Assembly (NCBI GenBank): GCA_002269645.1
Contig: NIVC01000255.1
Location: 310,001-374,000 of the forward strand
Length of the DNA stretch: 64,000 nt
DNA from: Macrostomum lignano
Lineage: Eukaryota
Reading direction: 5' to 3'
Both the position numbers and the translations under genes were made by a program. The notes beneath the pieces were generated by a model. That model saw only the letters and a list, made by a program, of their open reading frames with translations, did not search any database and was not told the DNA's origin. This document shows, piece by piece, positions 14,449-47,521 of the stretch. Numbering within the stretch: position 1 is the first letter of the stretch; every line of letters begins with the position of its first letter.

Positions 14449-15089
14449 TGCTGCAAATGATTACAGAAATTCTATTATATAAAATTCTAATCCTTTCGAA
14501 ATTTATATCCTATATACTAAAAATGAAATGTCTGTAACTAACTAGCTATGCGATAGATTTCAGAAAAAATGGCTCAACCGATTTTCTTCAAACTTGCACC
14601 ATTCGATCAGAAATTTTCCTGGGACGGTACATGCATCCTGGCTAAGAAATTGCTCAATTTTAAAGGGATTAAATATTCGAAAAACATGCTTTTTTGCAAA
14701 GGTCAAGCAGCTCTTTCGACCTGGAATGCATTGTAAGAATGCTAGAGAAAAAACTGACTGGCTCAATTCCGATTGTGATAAAGATTGCATCACAACAATT
14801 TGAAAACAGTGTCGATGAAATGCACACCCGACTTGATTAAAATTGCGTAACTATATTGCTAACTTAAATTGAGACTGATACTGGCTGACTGAGAAATTGA
14901 TTATGTCATAACTTTCTACTCCAATTGACTTGCTGTAAGAATTGAATTATAAGGGCCACAATTCATGTTCTCCAAATGAAAAGAGATAGCCCAGATGCGA
15001 ACAGACTGGGATGCTAATGTAGTGACCTGGGTTCGAATCTTAGTAGTGCAAAAATATTTTTTTATTAAAACATTAAAAACACAAAACTG

Positions 15090-17340
15090 CTAAACATAAA
15101 AGAACCACAATGTCAAACATAGAAGAGCCACCATGTTGAACATTAAAGAGCCACCATGTCGAAAATTAAAGAGCCACCATGTCAAGCATAAAAGAGCCAC
15201 CATGTTGAACATTAAAGAGCCAACATGTCAAACATTAAAGAGCCACCATGTAAAGCATATATGTGACTCCATGTCAAACATATACGTGACTCCATGTCAA
15301 ACAAAAAAGAGCCACGATGTAAAACATATACTTATGACTCTTTGTCGAACATAAAGAGCCACCATGTAAAGCATATACGTGACTCCATGTCAAACACATA
15401 CGTGACTCCATGTCAAACATTAAAGAGCCACCAAGAAAAAAATTAAAAGCCACTATGTCAAACATTAAAGAGCCACCATGTCAAACATTAAAGAGCCACC
15501 ATATCGAACACTAAAGAGCCACCATGTCAAACATATAAGTGACTCCATGTCAAATATATACGTGACTCCATGTCACACATAAAAGAGCCACCATGTAAAA
15601 CATATACATATGACTCCATAACAAACATTAAACAGCCACCATGTCGAACATTAAAGAGCCACCATGTCAAACATAAAAGAGCCACCATGTCAAACACTAA
15701 AAAGCCACCATGTCAAACAATAAAGAGCCACCATGTCAAACATATACGTGACTACATGTCAAACATATACGTGACTCCATGTCAAACATAAAAGAGCCAC
15801 CATGTAAAACATATACTTATGACTCTTTGTCGAACATAAAGAGCCACCATGTAAAGCATTTACGTGACTCCAGGCCAAATATATACATGACTCCATGCCA
15901 AACACATACATGACTCCATGTCAAACATTAAAGAGCCACCATGTCACACATTAAAGAGCCAACATGTCAAACATTAAAGAGCCACCATGTAAAGCATATA
16001 TGTGACTCCATGCCAAATATATACATGACTCCATGTCTAACACATACGTGACTCCATGTCAAACATTAAAGAGCCACCATGTCGAACGTTAAAGAGCCAC
16101 CATGTCGAACATTAAAGAGCCACAATGTAGAACATTAAAGAGCCACAATGTAGAACATTAAAGAGCCACCATGTCGAACGTTAAAGAGCCACCATGTCGA
16201 ACATTAAAGAGCCACAATGTAGAACATTAAAGAGCCACCATGTCGAACATTAAAGAGTCACAATATTTAGAACATTAAAGAGCCACAATGTCAAACATTA
16301 AAGAGCCACCATGTCAAACATTAAAGAGCCACCATGTCAAACATTAAAGAGCCACCATGTCAAACATATATGTGACTCCATGTCAAATATATACGTGACT
16401 CCATGTCACACATAAAAGAGCCACCATGTAAAACATATACATATGACTCAATAACAAACATTAAACAGCCACCATGTCGAACATTAAAGAGCCATCATGT
16501 CAAACATTAAAGAGCCACTATGTCAAACATTAAAGAGCCACTATGTCAAACATTAAAGAGCCACCATGTAAAGCATATATGTGACTCCATGCCAAATATA
16601 TACATGACTCCATGTCTAACACATACGTGACTCCATGTCAAACATTAAAGAGCCACCCTGTCGAACGTTAAAGAGCCACCATATCGAACATTAAAGAGCC
16701 ACAATTTAGAACAATAAAGAGCCACCATGTCGAACATTAAAGAGCCACCATGTCTAACATTAAAGAGCCACCATGTCGATTATTAAAGAGCCATCATGTC
16801 AAACAATAAAGAGCCACCATGTTGAACATTAAAGAGCCACCATGTCAAATATTAAAGAGCCACAATGTAGAACATTAAAGAACCACCATGTAGAACATTA
16901 AAAAGCCACCATGTCAAACATTAAGGAGCAAAAATGTAGAAAATTAAAGAGCCACAATGTAGAACATTAAACAGCCACAATGTCGAGCATTAAAGAGCCA
17001 CCATGTCGAACATTAAAAAGCCACCATGTCAAACATTAGAGAGCCACCATGTTGAACATTAAAGAGCCACCATGTCAAACATTAAAGAGCCACCCTGTCG
17101 AACATTAAAGAGCCACCATGTCGAACATTAAAGAGCCACCATGTCGAACATTAAAGTACTGCCATGTCGAACGTTAAAGAGCCACCATGTCGAACATTAA
17201 CGAGCCACGATGTCAAACATAAATGAGCTACCAAGTTAGACATAGAAGAGCCACCATGTGAAACATATATGTGACTCCATGTCAAACATTAAAGAGCCAC
17301 CGCTTCTAACATTACTGAGCCACCATGACAAACATAAAAC
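15090..17340. repeat. 23-bp satellite A (GAACATTAAAGAGCCACCATGTC) with variant units
   Basis: About 95 tandem units, with the interspersed variant CATATACGTGACTCCATGTCAAA. Confidence 0.95.
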
Positions 17341-17457: not shown

Positions 17458-17650
17458 TGGATGCTTGCTATTTAAGGATAGATACTTGCTATCAATTGGA
17501 TGCTTGCTATCTGGGGGTTCTTTCTATCTGGGGTGCTTGCTATATGAGGGATGCTTGCTATCTGGGGGTGCTTGCTATCTGGGGTGCTTGCTATCTGAGG
17601 GTACTTGCTATCTGGGGGGGGGGGGAGGGGATGCTTGCTGTCTTGGGATG
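17458..17650. repeat. 18-bp satellite GATGCTTGCTATCTGGGG
   Basis: Tandem units; the same satellite occurs at 21440-21565 and 32020-32410. Confidence 0.9.
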
Positions 17651-20593: not shown

Positions 20594-21599
20594 TCCACTA
20601 TGACAAACATATACGGTACTCCATGTCAAAAATTAAAGAGCCATCATGTCAAACATAACAGAGCCACCATGGCGAACATTAAAGAGCCACCATGTCAGAC
20701 ATTAAAGAGCCACCATGTCGAACATTAAAGAGCCACCATGTCGAACATTAAAGAGCCACCATGTCGAACATTAAAGAGCCACCATGTCGAACATTAAAGA
20801 GCCACCATGTCAAACATTAAAGAGCCACCATTTCAAACATAAAAGAGCCACTATGTAAAACATATATGCGACTCTACATCAAACATATACGTGACTTCAT
20901 GTCGAACATTAAAAAGCCACCATGTGAAACATATATGTGACTCCATGTCGAACATTAAAGAGCCACCATGTCAAACATATAAGAGACTTTATTTCAAATA
21001 TAAAAAAGCTACCATGTAAAACATAAAAACGACAATTTTGAACATTAAAGAGCCACCATGTCGAACATAAAGGAGCCACCATGTCGAACATAGAAGAGCC
21101 ACTATGTTGAACATTAAAGAGCCACCATATCAAACATTAAAGAGCCACCATGTCGAACATAAAGGAGCCACCATGTCGAACATAAAAGAACCACCATTTA
21201 GAACATAAAAGAGCCACCATGTCTAATATAAAAGAGCCACCATGTCGAACATAAAAGAGCCACCATGTTTAAAATTAAAGAGCCAACCTGTAAAACATTA
21301 AAAAAATTCACCATGTCAAACATATAAGTGACTTCATTTCAAACATAAAAGAGCCACCATGTCAAACGTAAAAGTGAGCGAATTTTAAAGGAGCCACTAT
21401 AATGCTAAGGAAACTGTCGCACTAGCTACTTATTATCTGGTGGATGCTTGCTATCTGGGGGATGCTTGCTATCTGGGGATGCTTGCTATCTGGGGGATGC
21501 TTGCTATCTGGGGGATGCTTGCTATCTGGGGGATGCTTGCTATCTGGGGATGCTTGCTATTTGGGTAACCCGGTTGAAAAAAATACTGGATTAGCCCAT

Positions 21600-22360
21600 T
21601 GAAATTGGCCCGCTCATCGGCCACTTCGTGTCAGAAAAGCCCGCTCTAAAAGCCCGCTCATTTTTCCAAATCAACGAGTCTCTCAAATCCGCCCGTTCCA
21701 CGGCCCGCTTCTGGGCCCGCTGGCTGGCCCGCTCACTGGCCCGTTCTAAACCGGCCCGCTGGCTGGCCCGTTGTTTGGCCCGCTGGCTGGCCCGTTGGTT
21801 GGCCCGCTCACTGGCCCACTCATTGACCCGTTCTAAACCGGCCTGCTGGCTGGCCCGCTGATTGGCCCCCTCATTGGCCCGTTCTAAACCGGCCCGCTGG
21901 TTGGCCCGTTGGTTGGCCCGCTGATTGGCCCGTTCTTAACCGGCCCGCTGGTTGGCCCGTTGGTTGGCCCGCTCATTGGCCCACTCATTGACCCGTTGTA
22001 AACCGGCCTGCTGGCTGGCCCGCTCATTGGCCCGTTCTAAACCAGCCCGCTGGCTGGCCCGTTGGTTGGCCCGCTGGTTGGCCCGTTCTAAACCGGCCCG
22101 CTGGTTGGCCCGTTGGTTGGCCCGCTGGTTGGCCCGCTCACTGGCCCACTCATTGACCCGTTGTAAACCGGCCTGCTGGCTGGCCCGCTCATTGGCCCGT
22201 TCTAAACCAGCCCGCTCATTGGCCCGTTCTAAACCGGCCCGCTCATTGGCCCGTTCTAAACCGGCCCGCTAATTGGCCCGTTCTAAACCGGCCCGCTGGC
22301 TGTCCTGTTGGTTGGCCCGCTGGTTGGCCCGTTCTAAACCGGCCCTCTGGTTGGCCCGCT
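21600..22360. repeat. Left subterminal repeat array (TGGCCCGCT / TGGCCCGTTCTAAACCGGCCCGC units)
   Basis: Reverse complement of the array at 31182-32000. Confidence 0.92.
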
Positions 22361-22682
22361 GAACGAACAAAAAAAATAAGTAAAGAAGCAAAATAAGCAT
22401 GAGATTTCTAAGTCAGACCGATGAGCCGTACAATTAGCTTTTTTATAAAAACCGGGAATATACTTCATCGGATCTGGTAAAAACAAAGAGATGTTAAGGT
22501 TAAAATTGAATACTAGTATTTTTTCATGGTGGCACGAATAGCTAAAAGAGCTAATATAGCTAATAGAGCTAAAAGAGCTAATATATAAAAGAGCAACCCT
22601 AGCCTCAGAGTCTATTCTCAACCCAAAGTAATGTTTGTCAGCATAGTGAAAAATTGTCACCACAATCGAGGCCTAGTCTCTA

Positions 22683-24353
22683 CTACTCGCTTTCCTCTTC
22701 ATTTTCTGCGCAGGCGCCACTTTTCGCAGACGAACTCTCCCGATCCCGTACGGTCCTGGCTGTACGGCGGAAGACCTCGCCGAGTTCGGCGTCTGTGAAT
22801 AGTTTTTTGTCCTCCTCTGAGACCAGTTTACTGGCCAGGTAGGACCGTATGGCCGCCTTCTTGGAGCTATCCAGCTCAACCCGGTTGGCCGCTTTCTCTC
22901 CTTTCACCTGTCGACCAGCCCAAGATGCGGTTCGCAGGTCTTGCTCAGGGCACACAGCAAGTATGACTAGCCGAACGGCTCGTCTGCGAATCTTGTTATT
23001 GTTTGCGGCTTTTCGCATTTCAACTGCTGCGGCTTCCAATTTTGTCAGGGCCAACGGACAAACCGTGACACCGGGAAATGCAGCTATCAGCGGCACACGT
23101 TTCGACGACTGGTTGCCCATCATGGAGGTCGATATATTTGCGATTGCCGTCGCAATGGCGTGGCTCACAAATCCACTGGTAAGCTGCGATGACGTCGAGC
23201 CACTTGGCTCGGCATCGATGCCGATATCGGCAGCAGCTGATGACGACTCTCCGGGTGCAGTACTCGAACCAGCGACCAACGTTTCGTAGTCACTAATAGA
23301 GCGCACCAGACTTTCGAGGTGGCTGCATGATTCTGTAGTTCTACGTGCCACCTCGTTGGCCGACCGCGCCTGCGCCGTGACGAACCGTAGCGTCTCAAGT
23401 ATCTGAGAATTCGCATGCATGGAACTTGCAAGACGGGTGTCATACTTTTGCAGCACGTCATCTTTCTGTGCCAGTTCCTGTTTCAGCTGCTCATTCTCAG
23501 ACCGAATGGCCTCATTCTCAATCTTCAGGTTGGCTGCATCAGTTTCAGCAGCCCCCCGCTTGTCCGTCTCTTCTCGATTTGCCTCACGTAGGTCACGACA
23601 TTCGATGTCGAGGTTCCGGCAGCGCGGGCATCCGGCATCAGGGTGATTTATAACGGGTTGCACGCGCCTATAGGCGCCTGCAGAGCCCGACCCCATTAAA
23701 GTTGCCAATTTGGCCAGGTTGTCCCGGGCAGCGTAGGCGGACTTCCTATCCGGAAAAGGCCCGGCTGTCAGGAAAGCGTCGAAAGTTTTTGCACTCGGGC
23801 TATGGCCAGTCCGTACTTGTACTTTAACGCCGACTGTTCGTGTTACGGGGTCCGGGTCGACGATGCACTTTTGGTCGATGGCCATAACTTTGCCGGTGTT
23901 AGTGTACGTGAGCACCCACCAAATAGCTTTGTGGATGACCATGACACGGGGCGCCTTAGCCTTTGGTGGTCCACCGGCCCTATTGCGATGCCGCATCTCC
24001 TTTCTCGACTCTAGATCTGGCTCGCTCGATGAGTCAGATAGAGATTCGCGATGCCGATGCCTATCGGCATTGGCTTCGGCTTTCCGTTTTGTAGTAGAGC
24101 CGGTCGGCTCCGCGGACACGGCCGTGCTCATATCGGAGCCGATTAGCGCCGTTGAAGTGGCGTCGTGGGCTTTAGGGAGCGTCGTGGGCTCATCTCTGCC
24201 GTCGCCATTCAGCTCAGCAGGATTTTCCTGGACGTCAGCAGCTGCAGTTGTTAGGCCAGTATTGGCATCTTTATCTTTCCGCTTCTCTTTTTCGGCCCGA
24301 TTCTCGTGATCCCTCTTCTTATTCATTCTATCTGTCTTCTTTCCGTCTCCCAT
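22683..24353 (-). CDS. Transposon accessory protein: low-complexity N-terminus, small beta-rich domain, CxxC + coiled coil, C-terminal BEN-like DNA-binding domain
   Basis: The 581-codon ORF (to 24428) is intact. The likely ATG at 24353 follows acceptor TCTCATTGCAG|AATA. The C-terminus AVRLVILAVCPEQDLRTASWAG...RVELDSSKKAAIRSYL...LGEVFRRTARTVR fits the BEN pattern. Confidence 0.7.
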   Translation of the reverse strand: MGDGKKTDRMNKKRDHENRAEKEKRKDKDANTGLTTAAADVQENPAELNGDGRDEPTTLPKAHDATSTALIGSDMSTAVSAEPTGSTTKRKAEANADRHRHRESLSDSSSEPDLESRKEMRHRNRAGGPPKAKAPRVMVIHKAIWWVLTYTNTGKVMAIDQKCIVDPDPVTRTVGVKVQVRTGHSPSAKTFDAFLTAGPFPDRKSAYAARDNLAKLATLMGSGSAGAYRRVQPVINHPDAGCPRCRNLDIECRDLREANREETDKRGAAETDAANLKIENEAIRSENEQLKQELAQKDDVLQKYDTRLASSMHANSQILETLRFVTAQARSANEVARRTTESCSHLESLVRSISDYETLVAGSSTAPGESSSAAADIGIDAEPSGSTSSQLTSGFVSHAIATAIANISTSMMGNQSSKRVPLIAAFPGVTVCPLALTKLEAAAVEMRKAANNNKIRRRAVRLVILAVCPEQDLRTASWAGRQVKGEKAANRVELDSSKKAAIRSYLASKLVSEEDKKLFTDAELGEVFRRTARTVRDRESSSAKSGACAENEEESE

Positions 24354-24744
24354 TATTCTGCAATGAGAGCGGGAAAGGTTTCTTTCTAAATGCGGTTTCA
24401 TATGACATGCGTCATATGACGCAAGCATGCGTCAGTGTCATGCTAATGAAAGTAAGGAAGGATATTGAATTCCATAACGAAAAATGCAACGCCTGTGCAT
24501 CTTCTATGTGCAATCGACGCTGACAAGTCGACGCAAGTATACTTTAGCTATGAGACGTTGATGGCATGGAAGCTGGCAAGCTACTGCTGGGAGAAGCGCT
24601 ACTATAGTAGTACTCGCTACACTACTCATGACATTGAGCCGGCTGGCTCGACTAGAAGTATTTATATAAATAGATCTAGATCTAATAGAGTAGTTACAGT
24701 ACAATATTGTCAATTATTTAACAGTGACGTACAGCCTATGCTGC

Positions 24745-25560
24745 CTACAGCTTCTTATCCCGTGTGTTAGACGGCCCGGCGCTAGCACCCGTCAGTGGAC
24801 GCATGCGCCTCTTGCCTAACCTCATGGCCTCAAAGGGCGCTTCTGGCTGAGTGTCAGGCATTTCGATTTTAAAAAAGTTGGGGTCGCGCTTCTGCTGAGG
24901 CTGATTACTGCGGTGCCGCCCGTGCTCTTGCAGCCGTCTCTGCTTTGTACGAGGTGACAAATTCGAAAACCAGGCCTCACAGTCAGGGCAGCAGTGCGGG
25001 TCCAGTTCCTGCCGATCCGCCCGTTTTCGAACAACGCGTACGCAAGCGTAATTCTTTTGATTCGGCGGGTCAGGCATGCGGTTATACTCCGCGCGCAGTT
25101 TGTTCAAGTTCTCAGCCGGCTCGTAGTCTCGCGCCGCGGGCTGATCGTCACTGGCGACGTTCGCAGTCGAGCCAGCCGGCTCAATGTCGTTAAACAGAGA
25201 CGGCGAACCGAGCTGGGTCTCGGCGTTGTAGCGAAGCTGATCGTCGTTGGCGTCGTTCGCAGTCGAGCCAGCCGGCTCAATGTCGTCAAACAGAGACGGC
25301 GAACCGAGCTGGGTCTCGGCGTTGTAGCGAAGCTGATCGTCGTTGGCGTCGTTCGCAGTCGAGCCAGCCGGCTCAATGTCGTCAAACAGAGACGGCGAAC
25401 CGAGCTGGGTCTCGGCGTTGTAGCGAAGCTGATCGTCAGGCGTCGTTCGCAGTCGAACCAGCCGGTAACCGGTAACCGATCAGGTCGACAAGAGTCGGCG
25501 ACATAGTTCGCGCCACGTCTCGAAGGAGGTCATCCTCTAGGGCTCAGGTCGTTCGACATG
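24745..25560 (-). pseudogene. CtIP/Sae2/Ctp1 C-terminal-domain protein with three 32-aa N-terminal repeats; frameshift at ~25438
   Basis: Positions 25053-24847 encode NYACVRVVRKRADRQELDPHCCPDCE...HGRHR...PNFFKIEMPDTQ, which aligns without gaps to the recalled human CtIP C-terminus. The frame is open from ~25437 to 24745. A 2-nt loss relative to the repeat consensus disrupts the 5' part. Confidence 0.8.
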
Positions 25561-25908
25561 TCTGAAAAGCAAGTATATGTCGTCTGTTATGCACACGCAA
25601 GTTTGTCCGACACACATCTGAGCTTGGAGTATCAATACCATGCTGCTGGGCTGTGCAGTGGGAAATTGTTAACTATTTATTACTATTACGTTACTAGTAA
25701 GTAGAGACGCTTGACAAACTTGATTAGTGAACGAACGATGATTGACCTGATTGGCCTGTATACGCCACAAATCGTATATATATATATGTATATATGAGCA
25801 AAATAAGCAATATAAACTAAATAAGCAGTGCGAAAGCAATATAATCAATACAAAGGCAATGTAAGCAATATAAGCAGTATTGGCAATATGAGCAATATAA
25901 GCAATATG

Positions 25909-25967
25909 AGCAAAACACAGTTGAAGAAGGCATGCTGGAAAAGAGCAATTATGGCATATCCCGTCCC
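25909..25967 (-). promoter_or_regulatory. 59-bp intergenic module, copy 1 (identical to 27706-27764)
   Basis: Exact direct repeat 234 nt downstream of the 26201 stop. The minus strand contains TTGCTCTTTTCCAG, an acceptor-like sequence. Confidence 0.6.
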
Positions 25968-26003
25968 CTTTGAAATCGAGCCGACTGGCTCGATTTCAAA
26001 GGG
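25966..26003. other. Perfect 17-bp-arm hairpin CCCTTTGAAATCGAGCC-GACT-GGCTCGATTTCAAAGGG
   Basis: Direct inspection. Its core is the element-wide GAGCC-N4-GGCTC palindrome. Confidence 0.9.
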
Positions 26004-26200
26004 CCAATTTGTCCAATTTCTCCAAATTGCCGTGCTCTTTCTAAAACGTGGCGGTCTTTGTACGGTTTAAGCGGAATCTAATCAGATTCAATAAACTCTA
26101 TATTCTGTTATACTCTCTTAATTGTGGTGGGCAGAAACGACTAGTGATTGAAGCTGCGGCTAACTACACGTTCCGGAATTACTAACGTGGCCTACATTAA

Positions 26201-27379
26201 TTACTTAAACCGCACATAGGCCGCCCACGTCCCTACAATGGCGACGGCCAGAGTCATGTATAGGACATTCGATTTATGTCCTAAGTACACCAGCCGGTAC
26301 TCCTGGGCAGCTCGACCGCGTCGCCTTGACTTTTTCAGCACATTGACCCGATTTTGCACCGGTGGCGTGACACCGGCGGATCCGGCGTGCTCATTAACGG
26401 TGCTCACGGCTCGGTCGAAGATGGCCTGGGCGTCGAGCGACAACTCGGTCTTCGCGCCAGCCGGCGCGTCTACGATTCCGCTGTCTCTGAGGTGCGAATA
26501 CAACGTGCGGACTGCATTAGTCCAGCACGTTGTTTCGCATCCCCGGGACCACAGAAAGATAAAGACACAAACTAGTGTCAAGATGGCATTGCCCATGCTG
26601 TCCGAAAATAGTATGCTGTGTTCAGACTCATACTGCCGTAGTTTGTAAGAAGCAGCAGTCATGAACGTCTGCATATCTGTATGCCAGCAGTATGGCCAGT
26701 TTTTTCCATTCGCGTACAGCTCTCTGCACCGACCGCAAATGCCAGAGTAATTTCCCGTCGCGCCGAGGGTGCCTTCGGCCTGCTGAGCGGAATCGCTCAG
26801 AGGCTCGTTGTACAACGACATGTCGCGAAGCTGTTTGACTACTCCTGTGGCAGCAGACGCAGCTGGGACACAGGTCGAGCCGGTTGGCTCGACACGACCC
26901 GTCGCGCCGAGGGTGCCTTCGGCCTGCTGAGCGGAATCGCTCAGAGGCTCGTTGTACAACGACATGTCGCGAAGCTGTTTGACTACTCCTGTGGCAGCAG
27001 ACGCAGCTGGGACACAGGTCGAGCCGGTTGGCTCGACACGACCCGTCGCGCCGAGGGTGCCTTCGGCCTGCTGAGCGGAATCGCTCAGAGGCTCGTTGTA
27101 CAACGACATGTCGCGAAGCTGTTTGACTACTCCTGTGGCAGCAGACGCAGGAACACAGCTCGAGCCGACTGGCTCAACTGTAGCTCCGGCGTCGTCACTA
27201 CAGTCGTCGTCCCAGTTGCTGCAGGCGCGCGATTTAACTAGCCGTTGCTGCTCGGCATGGGCTGCGTGGATGTCATCCTCACAGTCGTCGCAGTGAGAGG
27301 AGCGACAAAAAAAACAATAGTCGGCGAACGCGAAGTATTCCCGCGAATTGCATTTGGGGCATGGTTGCTGGTCCGGCAT
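26201..27379 (-). CDS. 392-aa transposon accessory protein: N-terminal Cys/His Zn-finger, three 47-48-aa repeats, unknown C-terminal domain
   Basis: Intact ATG ORF with CPKC..CFFC..HCDDC...H..H, and 141-144-bp in-frame repeats at ~26760-27190. Confidence 0.7.
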   Translation of the reverse strand: MPDQQPCPKCNSREYFAFADYCFFCRSSHCDDCEDDIHAAHAEQQRLVKSRACSNWDDDCSDDAGATVEPVGSSCVPASAATGVVKQLRDMSLYNEPLSDSAQQAEGTLGATGRVEPTGSTCVPAASAATGVVKQLRDMSLYNEPLSDSAQQAEGTLGATGRVEPTGSTCVPAASAATGVVKQLRDMSLYNEPLSDSAQQAEGTLGATGNYSGICGRCRELYANGKNWPYCWHTDMQTFMTAASYKLRQYESEHSILFSDSMGNAILTLVCVFIFLWSRGCETTCWTNAVRTLYSHLRDSGIVDAPAGAKTELSLDAQAIFDRAVSTVNEHAGSAGVTPPVQNRVNVLKKSRRRGRAAQEYRLVYLGHKSNVLYMTLAVAIVGTWAAYVRFK

Positions 27380-27705
27380 TGTGATGTCTTAATCTTAATT
27401 TGTTTATTTGTCCTTAATTTGTACAAATTAATTTCTTTTGCTGGTACTTCTTTGTCAGTGGGTCGACTGAAATTAATGCGAAGTAGGTGCACGATTATTG
27501 GAACAAAAGGACAGCTGCGTACCGGTTGTAACCTACTATATTGTCAGGTAGAAATAAAGGCGTAAAGGAAGGCAACATATGGATATAGACGTCATGTGAC
27601 CGACGTTTGTTACTAAATATAAATATAATTTTTTATGACACCACATAGCAATGTGCAGTAGTAAGCAGTATAAGCAATATATATATTATATATAAAAGCA
27701 ATAAA

Positions 27706-27764
27706 AGCAAAACACAGTTGAAGAAGGCATGCTGGAAAAGAGCAATTATGGCATATCCCGTCCC
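27706..27764 (-). promoter_or_regulatory. 59-bp intergenic module, copy 2
   Basis: Identical to 25909-25967 and 230 nt downstream of the transposase stop. Confidence 0.6.
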
Positions 27765-27993
27765 GTTTGAGCGAGGGTGTCCTCTAGCCCTCACCCCTTG
27801 TTGTAAACTGTAGTCATAAGTTTTGAATGAACAGGTGACATTTCTACTCAATTTAAAAAGCTTTAGAACTTTCGAATGTTTACTTACTATAGTGATGTGA
27901 GTTCTAAGAAATTATATTGTTTTACCAGAAAGCCTGTGCAACGATTTTTCCTTCTTATTGGGACACCCTACGTACAATGAGTACATACAATTC

Positions 27994-30774
27994 TCACGCT
28001 GCGTAAGAAAACTGAATATGGGGGAGGAATGCTACATAGCGGTCGTTCACACAACACGTAGCGAGTACGTCGTTAGCAGGGATTTCGAAGTAGTATTTGT
28101 CAACTGCGCAAAATGGATTGGCACGCAGGCGCCGAACGTGTGCGACTGAGCATCCGCCGTGGTCCGGTTCGCCAGTCAAGCGGTACAACGGATGATTGTC
28201 CTCGTGCGGCTCCACAGTCAGAAGGCGGCGTAGGCGAACCCATGCGCAATTGTCCCGGAGTTGAATTTCCTCAATTCGTGCGAATTCAAACGGCTGACGA
28301 CAGTTAGGGATGAGGACAGTAACAAAGCACGAGGCGGCGCGCTGGTGGATCAGGCGAGGCAAGAATATTTCAATGCGTAGCCCGCTGGTCAGTACTGCTT
28401 TGCCATACCGTGTGTCACCGCCCGCCAATTGGCGGCGAATAGGATTGCGCAGTCGCACACCATCCGGCAGTCGAACCTCACCATTTGGTGGTCCCTCGCT
28501 GAAGATGTTGGGGAGTTGCAATTCGGCCATCATTTGCCTTCGCGCCAATTGGCGCTGTAGGAGGCCGGCAACTTCGGTGTCAACATTCCTGGAGCCGTGA
28601 ATTTTGGTGCGAAGATTCGCATGCGACGACTCAAACAAGCCCGCAGACATCCTCCACATTGGCCCGTATAAAGTTACGTACGATACAAAGTGCTCACAAA
28701 CTTGGTGTGCATTGTACGTAAGGGCCATGTTGGAGTACATCTGAGGCAGCTGACTGTAAAAGTAGTGCAGAAGCCGGCTGGCTTTCATCACTTCCATTAG
28801 AGGCGCTCCATCCAATGTAAGCCAGAACATGGCCGTGGACAGTAGCTGAAGGTGCCAGTAGTAGCGGTCGGGCAGGATGCCTTACATCACCATAGGGCCG
28901 TAGACGATTAACCATGCCTCAAGTTCGTGGCCCCGAAACATGCCGAATTCATGGAAACTTCGGGGAGCACGTTGATGAGACAGGGGTACGTGAATCCGCG
29001 AAGAGGCAAGGTCCACATCTGCACGTCGCGAAACTAGATTGGGGTTATGCGCGTGGTACATGTCTGGTTTCTTAGGATGAAACAGCTGTTTCAAAATCCA
29101 GTGAACGAGTCCAAGATAGCACTGATGAAGCAGACACGGTGGACACCCATGCATGTAGTCGAAACCGTTTAACTGGTCCAACACTGACACGCACATAACG
29201 CCCAGATAGTTGTCCTTGCCGACCGGGATGTTGTGCGCCAGTAGGCGCGTGTCTCGCAAGCTACGAGCGTGCGGTGTAATACAACCGACTGCGGTTGCCA
29301 GCGCAACCGCCTCTTCTTTGCCACTGACTGGGTACCGATTGGCACCCAATGATCTCTGCGTCTTCACATAGCAGTTGTCGCAGCCGAACTCTGCATTGTG
29401 ACGCTTTAGACCGACAACCTCAGCTCTCTGTGGGGCATCCAAGACGAATAGGTACGGGTGCAGTCGAAGAAGACCAGGCGCGTCGCCTTCAGTGCCACCA
29501 CCTGTGCTGTAGGTGATCCCGATAGACCGGAGCTCATTCAGCTCTCTAACAAGGCCGGGAAGGAAGGTGGATGTCTTGACTTTCGACTTTGCAGCCCAGA
29601 AACCACATACGACGATGAAACGCGATTTCATTGCTTCGTGTACTTCGTTGATACTCAAGTACACTGGGCACATTTCCATCAGCGCGTCTGCAAATACTGG
29701 AAAGCCGTCGATGTTCACAGTATACGACAGATCTTGCTTCAAGTGTAGCCGAACTGAACGCTTGAAATGCCGATACTCGTCGCAACTGGATACTGAGACA
29801 AAATTACGATCTTCAGATGACAAATCGACAGGGAAAGTTACGCTCTGTAGAAGCCGGCACTGTTCAATTAACTGTCTGATTTGCAATTTAAAGTCGGTGG
29901 TATAAAACTTGGATACGCCGGCCGGCGACAGTTCCTTGTTACAATAAGTGCAATTTTCACGGTTCTGAGCCTGTGCTGACGTGACCTCAGCACTACAGGA
30001 GGAACAGAACAGTCGGGGTGGCGATGTAAAGTCGTTCGCGAATGCCTGGACTGTTTTCCGTAGTAAATATACACTACCAGGCAGGTTGCTACCGACTGGC
30101 ACAGCTGCATGGAAGAGGCGAAGCAGGTCAGCTATGCCTTTCCTTGGCAGAGACTGGCGCTCGCTGAACAAATGCACATAGGCCGCAAACGAATCGTAGG
30201 TCAACGGAGAGTCTAGGAAAAGTGCGGCTCCATTTCTCCTACGCGGCTGCATATCCATAGCTTCTGGGTTATGGGTGGCTCCATTGCCAACACACGGTAC
30301 ATCCTCATCCTCTGGTGGGCGGTCATCTTCAGTGAAGTCCTCACAATCGTCGCACTGCTCGATGGCGTCCAGCGCCATTGGAGCGCCACTCCAATAGTCG
30401 TCATCTGGAGCTTCTTCGCCTGGTTCCTCAACGATAGATCTAGAAGATACGTCCTCATCGTCGTTGTCTGAATACTGCGAGCCGGTAGGCTCGACGACCA
30501 TGGGAGTCTGGACGCCACTGCTACATCCACCTGTTGCCAATGCTGGCTGCCAGCTGCTGCCAACACTGGCTACACTGTTGCTTGTTTGCGCGTCATGAGT
30601 GGTTGGTACGTCATGAGTGGTCCGAGTTGCAGTTAGTAAATGGCTCACTGAAGCTTCTGCTCGTGTCGGACGGGCTGTCGCCGCAACTGTCTGTCTGAGT
30701 GATTCTTTGAGTCGACTGAAGTGCCGTGCGATGGCAACTGACTTCTTGTCGAGCTCTTTTAGTCGTTCAAGTGA
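27994..30774 (-). pseudogene. EnSpm/CACTA-type DDE transposase (Transposase_21/Tnp2-like), ~925 codons, single in-frame TAA at 28882-28884
   Basis: Motifs NIDGFPVF, LDAPQRA...HNAEFGCDNC, CLLH (C/DxxH) QCYLGLV, RAPRS...GHELEAWL, TYNAHQ...YGPMW...FES. The two called ORFs are joined in frame by GILPDRYYWHLQLLSTA. The frame is open upstream to an acceptor at ~30774. Confidence 0.9.
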
Positions 30775-31181
30775 CTGAAAATAAAGAAATTGAATACCTG
30801 TGTGACTAGGAGAGAATCCGTACTAAAATTGTTAATTAACAAATACCATCATTCTACTATCAGTTTGAATCAGTTTGCTATCTTAGCCCAAGAGCCAACA
30901 AAGGGCGAAGCAATGGTTTCACACTAAACTGGGTGATATCTGAAGTACATACGTCACAACGTAGCGCGATATACAAATTGCTGTGGGCGTATAAGGCGAT
31001 AAAAATAAATAAAATTGACACACTCATTGTACATGTCATCATGAAATTTGTGTATGCACAGTTTATTGGACAGCATTAGTGCTCTACAAATCAAATAATT
31101 GCCCGAGCGCCAAGACACCGCAAAAGTTTACACGTACAAGTTTATACACCATTTGATAAGATTATCACGTTCACAACAAGT

Positions 31182-32000
31182 CAGCGGGCCGGTTTAGAAC
31201 GGGCCAGTGAGGGGGCCAACCAGCGGGCCAACCAGCGGGCCGGTTTAGAACGGGCCAACCAGCGGGCCAACCAGCGGGCCGGTTTAGAACGGGCCAACCA
31301 GCGGGCCAACCAGCGGGCCGGTTTAGAACGGGCCAACCAGCGGGCCAACCAGCGGGCCGGTTTAGAACGGGCCAACCAGCGGGCCAACCAGCGGGCCAAC
31401 TAGTGGGCCGAGCAGCGGGCCGGTTTAGATCGGGCCAGTGAGCGGGCCAACCAGCGGGCCGTGCAGCGGGCCGGTTTAGAACGGACCATTGAGCGGGCCA
31501 ACCAGCGGGCCAACCAGCGGGCCGGTTTAGAACGGGCCAGTGAGCGGGCCAACTAGTGGGCCGAGCAGCTGGCCGGTTTAGAACGGACCATTGAGCGGGC
31601 CAACCAGCGGGCCAACCAGCGGGCCGGTTTAGAACGGGCCAACCAGCGGGCCAGTGAGCGGGCCAACTAGTGGGCCGAGCAGCTGGCCGGTTTAGAACGG
31701 GCCATTGAGCGGGCCAACCAACGGGCCAACCAGCGGGCCGGTTTAGAACAGGCCAACCAGCGGGCCAACCAGTGGGCCGCGCAGCGGGCCGGTTTAGAAC
31801 GGGCCAGTGAGCGGGCCAACCAGCGGGCTAATCAGCGGGCCGATCTGCGGATCGGTTTCGAGCGGGCCATTAGCGGGCTAATCAGCGGGCTTCAGAGCAG
31901 GCCGGGTTTCAGCGGGCCAATTTGTTGTAAAAGGCCTGTAATACGGGCCGATTCGCTTCGGCCCGCTAATGGCCCGCTCAAAAGCCCACTGAGGCCCGCT
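31182..32000. repeat. Right subterminal repeat array (AGCGGGCCA / GCGGGCCGGTTTAGAACGGGCCA)
   Basis: Inverted relative to the left array. Confidence 0.92.
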
Positions 32001-32619
32001 AAGTTTTTCAACCGGGTAATGCTTGCCATCTGGGGGATGCTTGCTATCTGGGGGATGCTTGCTATCTGGGGGATGCTTGCTATCTGGGGGATGCTTGCTA
32101 TCTTGGGATGCTTGCTATTTGGGTGATGCTTGCTATCTGGGGGATGCTTACTATCTGGGGGATGCTTGCTATCTGGGGATGCTTGCTAGCTGGGGGTGCT
32201 TGCTATTTGGGTGATGCTTGCTATCTGGGGGATGCTTGCTATCTGGGGAATGCTTGCTTTTTTGGGTAATGCTTGCTATCTGGGGGACGCTTGCTATCTG
32301 GGGGATGCTTGCTATTTGGGTGATGCTTGCTATCTGGGGATGCTTGCTATCTGGGGGATGCTTGCAATCTGGGGGATGCTTGCAATCTGGGGGATGCTTG
32401 CTGTCTTGGGATGATTTCTTTTTGCATTGCACTTCATTTCAGTAGTTTGTCTATTTTCTTTGTGAAAGCTTTATTTGGCTATCTTCTTTTACTTGTAGAG
32501 AACAGAGATTCTATACAGATGTCCCCCAACGGGGGGCGAAGATTGCTAGTCAATATAGCTAAGTTGATGTAACTAACATTCTAAATATTTTTGCCCAAGA
32601 TCGCAGGATTTTTACTAGA

Positions 32620-35222
32620 GAGGAGAGATAAGACAGGACAGTGGAGAGCAGCCGATTAAAGCGCTCAGTCTCCTCATAAATTGCCCGCATTGGCTGGTTC
32701 TTAAGCGGGTGCAGCACGTCGCCGTTGGGGAAGCGCTTAAGACAGCCATGGTAGAAGCAGTCATGAAACTGGAGTGGAGCACTGTCATAGTCTCCCGGTC
32801 GAAACCGTCCACCTTACGGCCCATGGCGAAAGCCTCGCCGCCAGAGTCGGCTGTCAGCAGACTGCCGCCAAATTCGGTTGCATTCAAATGTGCAAGCCAG
32901 CACCGCGCATTGTACGACTGCTCATCTGACCGGCGGGAAATCACCCCAAGAGTGTTTATTGGGCTCCATAAACTTTTGTGAATACTGCCATGGCCAAGCC
33001 CGCAATGGTGTTGGATTGGGCAAATGCGTCCAGTCCGCAAATGTTCTTAATCAGGCGGGTGTATTTAAGACAGCGTTCCCGCAAAATTAGAGTTTCCTGC
33101 AGGCAGTAGTCCAGGTACTCCTTGTTGAAATTAAACACTTGGCCCTCCTGCTTGGCCAGCCAGTCTGCGATGGAGTCGTGCTGCTTATTCTTCTTCCCGC
33201 CGTACATTTCAATCGAGCAGTAAGGCCCCACGTAGCCCCAGTTTTGCGGCTGGTTAAACACATGCGGGAAATTTCCTTTGGTTAGTTGGGTGCCAAAACC
33301 AAGCGCCTTTGGGATTTGCGCCAGACCAATAGGGATGAATTTGAGGCTGTCCTTGAATAAAATCTTATTGCTCTTCATGTACATTAGGCGGCTATTTTGG
33401 AAGATCACTTGCGGCTTCTTCTTGGCCAGTCCGTTGAGTAGGGCTCCGAGCAGGAGGAATGCGTCATACGCAGAGCCATTGTGTGCAATAGCAATAGCGC
33501 CCTGCTTGAACATACTAGTCAGCCAGCAGTAAAAGGCGTCAATTCAGTGCGGCCCAACTGAAACAAACTCTCGCATCCCGCAAGCACAGTCATTGTGGGA
33601 GACAGGCAGTAAAATCTCGTGCCAGATCGCGCCCCGCAATGCAATTGGCTGAGCTGTGCAACCCCCTACACGCGCAACAGCGGGGCCTAGGGAAGAGTTT
33701 GGGACACGCCTCACACGGATGTGGCTGCTGTGACCAAGTGTACCCGGTGCTGCTTGTCAGAGTCAACGTACGTCTCGAAATCTTAGTAAACTCTTAGACT
33801 CGCTAGACTCTTAAGCTTTAGGCGGGGTGACAAAGCACTCGTGGGTGGCAGTTTCATCGTACTGCTTGCAGACTGGGCACTTAACGTGACCACACTGATT
33901 CTCTGGGGCCTGGCCTACTTTTAGCTCTTCTAGATAGCCACACGTGCCGCAAACGTAGACTGAATCACAGCGAGATCTACCCGCCTTATTCTTGCGCTTG
34001 TGATTTTCTAGACACTGAGCATTATAACAATTTAGCCCGCAATCATGGCATCTCACATATACGCGGTTAGCCTTGCAGTTGGCACCTGTAGTCTTGCATG
34101 TGCTGCAGGCGTCGGCGCACTTGTGCTCGGGTTTGGTGCAGTCGTAGGCCATCTCGCACTTGGAGCAGTAGTGCATGGAGCCGAAAAACGCTGGCAACCG
34201 GGTGACCAGATTGAAGTGCTGCTCAACCAGGTGTAGGTGCAGAATCTCAGTGCCGGGCAGGTTGAAGATGCACGTGTTGGCCTCCTCTGCCCTGTACACC
34301 CGTACACCAAAATCGTGGCCAGGATGCAAGCGGTTCAGGGCCAGGATCGCCTCGGGCAGTACGTCCACCCCGAAAGGGCCGGTCTGCGAGACAGTTTGAA
34401 GAGTCTGTGTAGGGGGGGGGGGTAAGGCAATTCTTTTAGTAATCCCTGATATGTATAAAAGTATATTAGTAATCCATAAAATGGTTCTTTTAGTAATCCC
34501 TGATACTATGCATATTAGTTAAAATTCCTATCCGAAAATGGTTCTTTTAGTATTCCATGATACTGTGTAAAAATTATTTGAAATTCTCTTCAGAGTATGA
34601 TTTTTTAGTAATCCTTATGGTAAAAATTCCATGAAAATCAGTGCATAACTTATCGTGTAGAGGCCTGCTTCAATTTGGAGCTCTGTAGCTAGATTAGTCT
34701 GGGCGGACGAATTGGCCTTGATTGTTTGCCACACTTTCTTGGTGATCGCCTTGGCCACAAGTTGGAGATAGGCGCAGCCCACGACCAGAGCTCGCAGCAG
34801 GCAGCTCTTGTCCGTGTTGGTGATGCGGACATAGTGGCGCGAGAAAGCATGGCGCTCCTCCAGATGCTTGTTCTCGAGGGCGCAGCCACCTCGAGGCACC
34901 CAGGCCTTGAGCAGACGGATGGAAAAGTTGCTCGTCAGGACAGTGGCATCCGACTGCACAATCTTGTCAATGTGCTTGAACAGCAATTCCGCCGTCATGC
35001 GGGCTGCACGCACCGGAGGAGTATGCGCCGCTTTAAGCATGTTGTCGTTCTCAAACTTTGCAGCCATAAAATCATCCCCCGCCAAATCCTGCTTAAACAC
35101 CTCGAGAATACTAGCGAATGTCTCGCGTAAATCACTGTGTCGTCTAACTTCACCACATATTCAACGCCCTTTGCCCTAAACTTTGGCAGCTCCCGCTGGT
35201 TATCCAGCCGGGCCGTAAAACC
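32620..35222 (-). pseudogene. polB: Polinton/Maverick protein-primed DNA polymerase B, N-terminal, Zn-finger and exonuclease part; fragmented and 3'-truncated
   Basis: KIVQS...VPRGG...ITNTDKSCLLRALVV; Cys-rich cluster YCSKC...HKC..C..C; ExoI DFETY (~33780); ExoII AHNGSAYD; FKDSL..P..L..IPK..KGNFPHVFN..N..YVGPY; ExoIII-like YCLQET; WLAHL...GE...VDGFD. Several frameshifts are present. Confidence 0.88.
34413..34654. other. AT-rich insertion within pPolB, with internal repeats and flanked by GTGTAG direct repeats
   Basis: GTGTAG at 34407-12 and 34655-60; internal repeats of TTCTTTTAGTAATCCCTGAT. Confidence 0.5.
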
Positions 35223-42919: not shown

Positions 42920-43780
42920 TACATGACACCCTTCATGTCTGACATGATGCTTCTTTTATTGTACCATGATGCTTCTTAATTTTTAAATGACACTTTCATT
43001 AGTTTTTAAATGAGGCTTCTATGATTTTTATATGACGCTTCTATGATTGTTTACATGACGCTTCTATGATTTTTACATGACGCTTCTATAATTTTTACAT
43101 GACGCTTCTATGATTGTTTACATGGCGCTTCTATGATTTTTTACATGACGCTTCTATGATTGTTTACATGACGCTTCTATGATTGTTTACATGGCGCTTC
43201 TATGATTTTTTACATGACGCTTCTATGATTGTTTACATGACGCTTCTATGATTTTTTACATGACGCTTCTATGATTGTTTACATGACGCTTCTATGATTT
43301 TTTACATGACGCTTCTATGATTGTTTACATGACGCTTCTATGATTGTTTACATGACGCTTCTATGATTGTTTACATGGCGCTTCTATGATTGTTTACATG
43401 ACGCTTCTATGATTTTTTACATGACGCTTCTATGATTTTTTACATGACGCTTCTATTATTGTTTACATGACGCTTCTATGATTGTTTACATGACGCTTCT
43501 ATGATTGTTTACATGACGCTTCTATGATTTTTTACATGACGCTTCTATGATTGTTTACATGACGCTTCTATGATTGTTTACATGGCGCTTCTATGATTGT
43601 TTACATGACGCTTCTATGATTGTTTACATGACGCTTCTATGATTTTTTACATGACGCTTCTATGATTGTTTACATGACGCTTCTATGATTTTTTACATGA
43701 CGCTTCTATGATTTTGTAAATGACGCATCTATGATTTTTATATGACGCTTTTTTCTGATATTTTACATGATGCTTCTTTT
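42920..43780. repeat. 23-bp satellite B (CATGACGCTTCTATGATTGTTTA)
   Basis: About 33 highly homogeneous units at 43010-43750. Confidence 0.95.
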
Positions 43781-44387
43781 TAAAAAGTATTTTAGTTTTC
43801 CTGACGTTGAAAAGTTTTAATTAAAAAAATTGTACTCTATGAAAATTCGAACCATCGTCGCTGCATTTAGCAGTTCAGTTTGTTCACCTCTAGGCTAGCT
43901 CTCATCGTTTTGATAACATCAAATTTTGCACTTATATAATTCAACACTTTAAAATCCAAGCATAGAGTAAATCACACGAAGCAGTTATGACATAATCAGT
44001 TTCTCAGTCAGTCAGTATCAGTTAACAATATGGTTACGCAATTTAAATCAAGTCTGGTGCTACGCTTCCACACTGCATTTTCAATTCAAGTCGGAGTTAC
44101 AATTCAGTTATGATGCAATCTATTTCAGAATCAGAATTCAACCAGTCAGTTTTTTCTCTAGCATTCTTACAATGCATTTCAAGTCGAAAAGTTTGCTTGA
44201 CCTTTGCAAAAAAGCATGTTTTTCGAATATTTAATGCCTTTAGCATCGAGAAATTTCTTAGCCACGATGCATGTACAGTCACGGGAAAATTTCTGATCGA
44301 ACAGTGCAAGTTCGAACAAAATCGGTCCAGCCATTTTTTCTCTAATCGATCACATAGACACAGACAGACCATTTTTAGTATATAGGA

Positions 44388-45919: not shown

Positions 45920-46310
45920 ACCCTAACCAATGAATCCGGAGAGTTGAGTTGTTTGACGAAAAAATTCGATTGAGTCCAGTTTAGCGGAGACGATTTCAAT
46001 GTTTTAATTTTGACGGAGAGAATTTCTGTTTCGTGGAGAGGATTTCGATGGTGTTCAGTTTCACGGAGAGGTTTCGATGATGTTCAGCTTCACGGAGAGG
46101 ATTTCGATGATGTTCAGCTTCACGGAGAGGATTTCTGTTTCGGGGAGATAATTTATGATTGATTTCTGTTTTATGGAGACGATTTTGATGAATTTAAGTT
46201 TCAAGGAGATGATTTCGAAGGAGTCCAGTTTCACGGAGAGGATTTCGATGGTTTTCAGCTGCACGGACAGGATTTCTGCTTCGCGGAGAGGATCTTGATG
46301 GATTTGGAAT
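45920..46310. repeat. 30-bp minisatellite (GTTCAGCTTCACGGAGAGGATTTCGATGAT)
   Basis: Tandem diverged units. Confidence 0.8.
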
Positions 46311-46319
46311 CTTCAATCA

Positions 46320-47310
46320 GTCACAGAAGAGAGTAAAGAGAAAAATGAAAATAGAAGAGGGATGAGATGATAGAAAACAGAGTAGAAATGAGTGGAGAGA
46401 TTAGACATGACAGAAGGGAGAGAAGAGGGGAGTAAGGCGGGAACGGAGAGAGAAGAGAAGAGAAGAGAAGAGCGGAGATACGAGGGGAGATATGAGATAG
46501 CAGAGAGGAGACAGGAGAGATAAGAGGAGAGAGAAGAGAGGAGGGATAAGAGCGTACAGAGGAAATAGAAGAGGAGAGAGTAGAGGAGAAAGAAAAGAGT
46601 ACAGATGAGAGATGAGAGAGGAGAGGAGGGAGGAGATGAAGGGAGAGGATATGAGAGAGGAGATATGAGATAGCAGAGAGGAGACAGGAGAGAGAAGAAA
46701 GGAGGGATAAGAGCGTACAGAGGCAATAGAAGAGAGGAGAGAGGTGAGAGGTGAGAGGAGAGAGATGAAAGATCGGAGATCAGAGATTTAAGAGAAGAAA
46801 GTAGTGAGGAGAAAGAAAAGGGCAAAGATGAGAGTGCAGAGAGGAGAGAAACGTAAGGAGACAGGTGGTAGAAAGGAGTGTAAAAAACAGGAGATAAGAA
46901 AGGAGAGGGTGAGAGTGAGAGCATATAGGAAAGTGTAAAAGGGGAGCAGAGGAGAGAGAATAGATAAGTGAGTAGAGAAGAGATATGAGAGAGGAAAGAC
47001 GAGGGGAGAGAGGAGACAGGAGAGAGTAAATTTTAAAGACCTGGGAGAAGAGATAAATAAGATAGTACAGATGAAAGGAGAGAGAGGAGAGATTAGAGAT
47101 GCAATTAGAAAAGAGATAAGTGAGAAAAGAGAGATAGAGATTTGAGAAGAGAGGAGAGAAGATGAGAGGAGAAAGGAAAGGAGAGAAGAGAGAATGGAGA
47201 GGAGAGAAAAGAGAGAAGACAGGAGACGGTAGTAAGGAGGGCAGAAAGATAAAAGATAAGAAAGGAGAGGGTGATATGAGAGATATGAGATATGAGAAAT
47301 GAGAGCAGAG
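46320..47310. repeat. GA-rich low-complexity tract
   Basis: Composition; the antisense L/S/P/F ORFs are artefacts. Confidence 0.9.
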
Positions 47311-47521
47311 ACATGACAGTCCGAGTCTGGACAATGCCAGTGAGTTTTGCAAATAGGGAAAACAAGATATCCGGTAATTGAAATGCATTGTAAAGGATTT
47401 GGAGATGATTTGGAAGATGGGATTCAAGTCATGGAATTTCAGCTGATGGGAGTTCTTCCCCTTCAGAATTCCGTTGATGGAAGTTCTTCCCCTCTCTTTT
47501 CCGAAGGAGGAGTTCCACTCG

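Follow-up and report, generated by a model that had tools for sequence, protein, structure and literature searches.

Host coding sequence captured by Pack-MULE, CACTA and Helitron elements usually remains close to its parent gene in nucleotide sequence, often keeps introns and decays neutrally. Transposons have also kept host-derived accessory genes, among them genes for an RPA-like protein in Helitrons, for ULP1/OTU proteases in MULEs and CACTAs and for an XPG-like nuclease in Academ, and Mu Gam is known as a mobile-element end-protection protein. In the genome of Macrostomum lignano, a 64,000-nucleotide (nt) stretch (GenBank assembly GCA_002269645.1, contig NIVC01000255.1, positions 310,001–374,000 of the forward strand; hereafter, the window) contains a 10,448-bp DNA transposon, and one gene of this element, referred to here as the SAE2 gene, encodes a domain of the CtIP/RBBP8/Sae2/Ctp1 family. 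Capture of host fragments and long-term retention of accessory genes by DNA transposons are known already, and what appears to be new is the CtIP/Sae2 domain as cargo; a literature search found no report of a transposon with a CtIP/Sae2 domain or with PF08573, the corresponding Pfam family. Like a transduplicated fragment, the captured sequence is a piece of host coding sequence between class II ends, but here the synonymous sites are saturated and the protein is conserved. As with the Helitron RPA and Academ XPG genes, a domain of the host repair or replication machinery is carried as a transposon gene, seen here in one copy of the element. Judged from its sequence, the finding goes beyond a routine gene fragment, because it combines a selection signature with an in-frame fusion to element-specific repeats.

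The transposon and its CtIP/Sae2 domain

The original prediction had placed a transposon-encoded CtIP/Sae2 C-terminal peptide at 24847–25053, with the strand unstated. Translation of the minus strand of this segment gave NYACVRVVRKRADRQELDPHCCPDCEAWFSNLSPRTKQRRLQEHGRHRSNQPQQKRDPNFFKIEMPDTQ, identical to the predicted peptide, and nothing resembling a CtIP peptide was encoded by the plus strand, so that the peptide is confirmed and its strand is minus. In the HMMER comparison with Pfam PF08573 (SAE2/CtIP_C) that had been proposed as a check, the open reading frame (ORF) at 24745–25107 on the minus strand matched positions 77–109 of the 110-position profile with 27.7 bits (E = 6e-6), above the curated gathering cut-off of 19.8 bits, and the restored 253-amino acid (aa) protein described below gave the same outcome. 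When 1.84 billion representative proteins were scanned exhaustively with HMMER, the SAE2 ORF had 35 matches at E ≤ 1e-3 (best E = 4.8e-26), among which the named proteins were CtIP/RBBP8 or Ctp1 C-terminal domain proteins. When 38 domains were aligned with MAFFT, the stretch from VVRK to TQ was gapless against vertebrate RBBP8, and CxxC, RHR, NF(F/W) and P.TQ were all present in the transposon domain, which reproduces the gapless CtIP alignment of the original prediction. The CPDC and GRHR of the transposon copy occupy invariant columns of this alignment. These data indicate that the peptide is a genuine CtIP/Sae2 C-terminal domain, with a similarity far beyond chance. Profile, motifs and nearest relatives place the gene in the SAE2 domain family, although its cyclin-dependent kinase (CDK) site is missing; the lack of the N-terminal coiled coil and of host synteny indicates that it is not a CtIP orthologue.

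The SAE2 gene and its parts are as follows.

24745–25504, minus strand: SAE2-domain gene, with an ATG at 25504 followed by 22 codons and an in-frame TGA at 25438–25436; stop codon at 24747–24745
24790–25095, minus strand: region of homology to the CtIP C-terminus (YNRMP...CxxC...RHR...NFF...PDTQ...GKRRMRPL), which encloses 24847–25053; best Pfam stretch, 24847–24945
25140–25465, minus strand: tandem repeat of 96 nt × 3.4, encoding the N-terminal 32-aa units DDQLRYNAETQLGSPSLFDDIEPAGSTANDAN (found with Tandem Repeats Finder, TRF)

That the domain is encoded by a transposon was also borne out, as the SAE2 ORF lies inside an element bounded by terminal inverted repeats (TIRs) and target-site duplications (TSDs).

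21566–21568, plus strand: left TSD, TAA; on this strand, TAA abuts both ends of the element
21569–21581, plus strand: left TIR, the 13-mer CCCGGTTGAAAAA, which has two exact occurrences in the window
21702–22358, plus strand: left subterminal tandem array of 12-, 27- and 51-nt units built on GGCCCG (TRF)
31182–31890, minus strand: right subterminal tandem array, matching 21702–22358 in inverted orientation (TRF)
32004–32016, minus strand: right TIR, the 13-mer CCCGGTTGAAAAA
32017–32019, plus strand: right TSD, TAA, abutting the element end

The two occurrences of the 13-mer, against 0.05 expected by chance in the 64-kb window, are inverted relative to each other. Deleting the element together with one TAA joins the flanks into one normal, continuous unit of an 18-mer satellite, and the subterminal arrays are 83–85% complementary to each other (for one pair of 285 nt, 85% with 31290–31574). 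Because of the inverted 13-mer ends, the TAA flanks, the restored satellite unit and the inverted arrays, 21569–32016 is a class II (cut-and-paste) DNA transposon of 10,448 bp inserted in the satellite. All four of its genes are on the minus strand; from the transposase side, the order is transposase-like ORF, ORF392, SAE2 gene, ORF581, and the spacers between them measure 617, 699 and 316 nt. A second copy of the 10.4-kb element was found neither within the window nor in the two host CtIP loci. The 18-nt satellite, ATGCTTGCTATCTGGGGG, which served as the insertion target, lies in the same orientation on both sides (21434–21565 and 32019–32415) and is found again 4 kb upstream, at 17480–17617.

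As it stands, the SAE2 gene is interrupted. The domain is encoded in the +1 frame, which stays open over 244 codons (25479–24748) and has no ATG ahead of Met-25077. Comparison of the first, partial repeat unit with the other units revealed a 2-nt gap between 25439 and 25438, which brings the TGA into frame. Re-insertion of 2 nt restored a single 253-aa ORF, MSPTLVDLIGYRLPAGSTANDANDDQLRY...KKL. The most economical reading is that this 253-aa ORF would be the gene of the family and that the present copy carries a recent 2-nt deletion, with a frameshift at codon 23. Considering that spliced leaders of M. lignano end in ATG (PMC8629364) and that gene neighbors separated by less than 1 kb often form operons in this species (PMC8629364; PMC5730564), other routes of expression of the SAE2 gene are possible. 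The N-terminus of the encoded protein consists of 3.4 copies of a Pro/Gly/Asp-rich, transposon-specific 32-aa repeat, each unit of which contains one TQ and one SP. No coiled-coil-type Pfam match was obtained with the restored 253-aa protein, whereas the family members P0037 and P0003 do give such matches. The predicted absence of the N-terminal coiled coil thus stands, its place being taken by the transposon-specific repeats.

Descent from a macrostomid CtIP and selection on the module

The best HMMER match of the SAE2 ORF (P0002; 108 bits, E = 4.8e-26, 54% identity) is the M. lignano protein Mlig004387 g2. A second protein in the same 90% cluster, P0037, is Mlig004387 g1, in which an N-terminal coiled-coil-like segment is present. 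The Mlig004387 loci (L001:10001–13072 and L002:10001–13315) contain introns, lie between an acetyl-CoA-synthetase-type (ACAS) gene and an EMP24 gene on two homeologous contigs, and are identical to each other in the last exon. Because of these introns, the ACAS–CtIP–EMP24 synteny in both homeologs and the coiled-coil N-terminus, Mlig004387 is the ordinary CtIP gene of the host itself. Homology to the transposon copy is confined to the last exon of host CtIP and reaches its natural C-terminus, with 54–55% identity over approximately 100 aa. Over this C-terminal region the two proteins share YN(R/K)xP, VVRxR..R..L, CxxC, RHR, NFF, P.T and a GKRRxRPL tail; the transposon gene differs in that it is intronless, lies between TIRs rather than between ACAS and EMP24, has 32-aa repeats in place of the coiled coil, and carries TQ where the host has TP. 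When scored against the Pfam SAE2 profile, host CtIP reached 14.3 bits, which is below the cut-off, the transposon copy being nearer to the family profile.

The proposed comparison of its phylogeny with that of the host gene was carried out as a neighbor-joining tree of 34 domains, in which all 200 bootstraps paired the transposon copy with Mlig004387 as its sister, on branches of similar length. The two also share derived states, namely GRHR where the others have SRHR, NFF where the others have NFW, HCCPDCEAWF, and the loss of the Thr-Pro site. On account of the sister placement and these shared derived states, a macrostomid CtIP, rather than some distant source, is the origin of the module. 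The exhaustive scan turned up no nearer donor than the host gene, at 54% identity, in protein sets from which transposon ORFs of this genome are missing by design.

Over 98 aligned codons, the transposon and host sequences are identical at 54 aa and at 59.5% of nucleotides. The proportion of differing synonymous sites (pS) is 0.73, which amounts to saturation, the nonsynonymous distance (dN) is 0.40, and 10 of 27 four-fold sites are identical. At the 16 columns that are at least 80% conserved in other CtIPs, the transposon copy keeps 12, the same 12 as the host, and at poorly conserved columns the two agree in 27 of 64 cases. A relative-rate test with P0003 as the outgroup counted 16 changes unique to the transposon and 8 unique to the host (chi-square 2.7, not significant). 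When neutral drift from the host sequence to 53% identity was simulated, the frame stayed open and the 12 residues were kept in 5 of 100,000 trials, and drift to this identity would leave synonymous sites far from saturation. Since synonymous sites are saturated, every family residue conserved in the host is kept and the frame is open, with P = 5e-5 in the neutral simulation, the domain has evolved under protein-level purifying selection over practically the full distance between it and the host gene. Neither near-identity to the host gene nor neutral decay, which had been named as alternatives with the original prediction, describes the module: the former disagrees with the amino acid identity and pS, the latter with the 12 retained residues and the simulation.

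Other genes of the element and the state of this copy

The remaining genes and a palindrome upstream of the SAE2 gene are listed below.

22686–24428, minus strand: ORF581, intact from ATG to stop, with a central coiled-coil-like stretch and two EPxGS sites
25966–26003, no strand assigned: perfect 38-nt palindrome with 17-bp arms and a 4-nt loop (DNA fold, −21.7 kcal/mol, z = −7)
26204–27379, minus strand: ORF392, intact, with a Cys-rich N-terminus and three 144-nt repeats (26754–27175), each with an EPxGS site
27997–30822, minus strand: transposase-like ORF, spanning approximately 940 codons of the same frame, with one internal TAA (28884–28882)

A further link between the four genes is the palindrome GAGCC-N4-GGCTC, often extended to TCGAGCC-N4-GGCTCGA. 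Eleven exact sites and one site with a single mismatch were found (22968, 23197, 24097, 24636, 25169, 25265, 25361, 25978, 26877, 27021, 27162 and 30479), all within the transposon, against none in the other 53 kb of the window and none in the host locus L001 (0.05 expected). The exact sites in genes occur in all four genes and share one reading frame, giving (V/I/A)EP(T/A/V/S)GS; five of them are independent and the remainder are tandem-repeat copies. The mismatched site (22968) belongs to ORF581, where it is read in a frame other than that of the EPxGS sites, and two further GAGCC-N4-GGCTC sites are intergenic. Between ORF392 and the SAE2 gene, the 38-nt palindrome in the spacer is itself centered on such a site. 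This motif may be a tether that assembles the four element proteins, either as a DNA site or as a peptide. Two element genes contain near-perfect, in-frame tandem triplications (96 nt at 25140–25465 and 144 nt at 26754–27175), with one palindrome per unit.

ORF581 showed no similarity to Pfam, to the Protein Data Bank (PDB) or to the CtIP N-terminus, and ORF392 had no Pfam or PDB match. The idea that the coiled coil of ORF581 might supply the CtIP N-terminus lacking from the SAE2 protein was rejected, as BLASTP against P0003 and P0037 yielded no more than a 16-aa coiled-coil-like match (E = 0.07). PDB sequence searches with all four element proteins returned nothing usable, and a single-sequence AlphaFold2 model of the transposase core was discarded (pLDDT, the predicted local distance difference test score, 33).

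The element resembles the CMC (CACTA/Mirage/Chapaev) transposons in that it has a TSD of 3 bp, long subterminal tandem arrays in inverted orientation, a large transposase and several ORFs, and the order of the transposase motifs (DG..F, D.P...G.....C..C and D.MH) resembles that of CMC transposases. It differs from them in its termini, which start with CCCGG and not CACTA, and no Transposase_21 or Tnp2 Pfam match was obtained even at E ≤ 10. We consequently call the element CMC-like only and do not assign it to the CMC superfamily.

Within the transposase-like frame, the ORF at 28882–30648 (minus strand) is 100% identical to part of an M. lignano UniRef protein, P0001, and over 542 aa P0001 and the window are 99.8% identical. 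The first 330 aa of P0001 belong to another gene and are encoded nowhere in the window. The 99.8% match together with this foreign segment shows that at least one further, very young copy of the element is present elsewhere in the genome; this extra copy, seen via P0001, was the only one detected, and a protein-database search for relatives of the transposase, metagenomes included, likewise returned P0001 only. P0001 is annotated in UniRef as "Guanylate cyclase domain-containing protein" and is a chimera, the part matched in the window being 29149–31812. It is made up of approximately 330 aa of a host gene, then a translated subterminal array (WPAGWPVLNRP...) and then the N-terminal half of the transposase. 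The annotation is thus a mistake, in which another copy of the element was fused to a host gene.

The in-frame TAA at 28882–28884 splits the transposase-like frame, which indicates that the copy in the window is not autonomous. A recent 2-nt deletion in the SAE2 gene would fit this single nonsense codon in the transposase of the same copy, which probably was inactivated recently by the TAA in the transposase and the 2-nt frameshift in the SAE2 gene. Exact-protein look-ups with P0001, the 120-aa ORF, ORF581 and ORF392 gave no record of other copies. This fits the policy of the NCBI annotation of M. lignano, from which transcripts overlapping repeats were deliberately dropped (PMC5730564). Word-indexed searches with the 120-aa ORF, and with one query that joined the C-terminal part of the transposase to ORF392, the SAE2 ORF and ORF581, found no match; they missed host CtIP too and are weak negatives. 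No transcript or protein record for the SAE2 ORF was present in the databases searched.

Other mobile and repetitive DNA is present in the window. Beyond the right-hand satellite, 32956–33513 and 33811–34368 (both minus strand) hold part of a type B, protein-primed DNA polymerase (PF03175, E = 4e-13) and an adjoining Cys-rich ORF, which probably are what is left of a Maverick/Polinton-like element or a similar one. Another mobile element is represented by an ORF at 61243–62457 (minus strand) that matches the retroviral-type integrase core (rve, PF00665, E = 1e-11); its score against the integrase C-terminal family PF22938 was 19.8 bits, below the gathering cut-off of 27. Long tandem arrays with a 23-nt unit, together with a GA-rich block of strong purine skew, occupy 14983–17000, 42931–43874 and 46300–50300, and the GA-rich block yields long spurious ORFs, e.g., 48701–50269.

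A possible role in the repair of excision breaks

In the gapless alignment, Thr847-Pro848 of human CtIP (numbered as in the original prediction, in agreement with PMC11260466), the CDK site equivalent to Ser267-Pro of yeast, corresponds to Arg-Asp in the transposon copy and to Gln-Ala in host CtIP, although T-P occupies this position in 85–91% of other family members. The original prediction had read the replacement of TP by an RDP stretch as a possible phosphomimic conferring independence from the cell cycle. The absence of TP and the retention of TQ were upheld, whereas the phosphomimic was rejected, because the Asp aligns with Pro848 and not with Thr847 and because host CtIP also lacks the CDK site. 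Since the host has Gln-Ala there, loss of the site is a lineage trait and not an adaptation of the transposon. The equivalent of Thr859-Gln, the ATM/ATR site, is kept in the transposon copy (PDTQ), the host sequence being PPTP. Host CtIP thus lacks the equivalents of both Thr847-Pro and Thr859-Gln (QA and TP, respectively).

Human CtIP 849–888 is a minimal RAD50 binder, and P848, F851, V854 and F856 are modelled hydrophobic contacts of human CtIP with RAD50 (PMC11260466). The equivalent of 849–888 is complete in the transposon copy, PNFFKIEMPDTQPEAPFEAMRLGKRRMRPL, and the four contacts correspond to D, F, I and M (three of four hydrophobic) in this copy and to A, F, I and M in the host. The transposon copy differs from the characterized Ctp1 peptide and CtIP segment by Asp in place of Pro848 and Arg in place of Thr847. 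As cited in PMC11260466, Zdravkovic 2021 found that a 15-aa C-terminal peptide of Ctp1 suffices for stimulation of the MRE11–RAD50–NBS1 complex (MRN) in vitro, so that an active, N-terminally truncated transposon protein is plausible. Excision sites of Ac/Ds in yeast gave no revertants upon deletion of MRE11 and SAE2 (PMC3299998), which indicates that transposition intermediates depend on the MRE11/SAE2 machinery.

Considering these points, we propose, at what we regard as even chances, that the element family maintains the SAE2 gene as a modulator of MRN, acting through RAD50 docking, MRE11 licensing and templated repair of the donor site. The gene would be retained by the family for its benefit to transposition. 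Its conserved C-terminus would dock on RAD50 and license the MRE11 endonuclease at the hairpin-capped or protein-blocked ends or flanks left by the transposase, so that the ends could be resected, the donor site repaired from a homologous template and the cell survive. The repeats, with their three TQ/SP clusters and the EPxGS motif common to the four element proteins, may replace the coiled coil as the recruiting or multimerizing part. A fuller version, to which we give appreciably less than an even chance and which we offer tentatively, is that the transposon family took the RAD50-binding, MRE11-activating module of host CtIP, kept it for a long time under selection, added its own repeat N-terminus and so brings along its own resection cofactor.

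Several observations weigh against a maintained MRN modulator. The SAE2 gene of this copy is probably frameshifted after codon 22 and its transposase contains a stop, and the gene has been read in one copy of the element. The transposase-like ORF, searched whole and as its core, matched no Pfam family even at E ≤ 10. The tetramerizing N-terminus, a region required in vivo for CtIP, Ctp1 and Sae2, is absent from the transposon protein, as is the Thr847-Pro equivalent, which human CtIP needs to stimulate MRN and which the host protein lacks as well. Furthermore, the purifying selection could have acted in an unsampled, divergent donor CtIP before a recent capture, e.g., one followed by horizontal transfer.

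The last point leads to an explanation that we consider less likely, in which the gene is a passenger produced by transduplication, i.e., a CtIP 3′ end captured fairly recently and useless to the element, the conservation being inherited from the donor, possibly of another species. The presence of only the last ~100 codons of the host gene, with the N-terminus missing, the frameshift close to the putative start in this copy and the youth of the element copies (99.8% identity), which fits a recent burst or invasion, are all as expected of a passenger. The lack of any transcript or protein of the SAE2 ORF in the databases searched agrees with it too, but means little given that repeat-overlapping transcripts were dropped from the annotation (PMC5730564). 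Recent capture is harder to reconcile with the 59.5% nucleotide identity to the host at saturated synonymous sites, with the failure of the exhaustive scan to find a closer donor, and with the fact that intron or untranslated-region remnants were not seen; moreover, the fragment is the exact conserved module up to the natural C-terminus, fused in frame to repeats bearing the signature motif, with an ATG ahead. That the sequence is instead a host CtIP exon or pseudogene merely lying between repeats is hardly credible. Genes of this genome are embedded in repeats and the SAE2 ORF has no recognizable promoter, but the ORF lies 3.2 kb and 6.9 kb inside two matching, TAA-flanked TIRs, the real host gene is elsewhere, in conserved synteny and in two copies, and the element-restricted GAGCC-N4-GGCTC/EPxGS motif is common to the SAE2 ORF and the other three element genes.

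A different function is conceivable but improbable: as a decoy, a CtIP C-terminus without the tetramerization domain would fill the S-site of RAD50 and block host CtIP, thereby shielding the excised transposon ends from MRN clipping or favoring end joining at the donor site. The missing coiled coil, the retained RAD50-binding stretch and the absent, activating Thr847-Pro site are compatible with such an inhibitor, although, with the site missing from host CtIP as well, this absence is no sign of lost activation. CxxC and RHR, which serve DNA binding in CtIP-type domains, are also conserved and would be superfluous in a pure RAD50 plug. The model for inhibition comes from the telomeric MIN/iDDR motifs of Rif2, Taz1 and TRF2, which are small binders of the RAD50 surface, as the transposon module would be; these short motifs bind the same surface, modulate nuclease access and inhibit MRN (PMC11260466). 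The same source cites C-terminal fragments and peptides of Ctp1 as stimulating MRN in vitro, not inhibiting it. MIN/iDDR and Mu Gam are unrelated to the module in sequence, whereas the module is a true CtIP homologue.

If the SAE2 gene is indeed maintained as an MRN modulator, it would be a natural minimal CtIP, without the coiled coil or the Thr847 site, for asking what MRE11 licensing needs. M. lignano suits such tests, being transgenic-tractable, stem-cell-rich and neopolyploid, and since transcripts overlapping repeats were left out of its public annotation, genes of this kind would escape notice. How the excision break is repaired determines cell survival and also whether the element gains copies, the donor site being refilled from a homologous template; so far, this choice has been viewed as that of the host. 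Were the proposal true, the element would intervene directly at the MRN/CtIP commitment step, and on the fuller version given above no eukaryotic DNA transposon before it would have been known to encode a factor for pathway choice in double-strand break repair.

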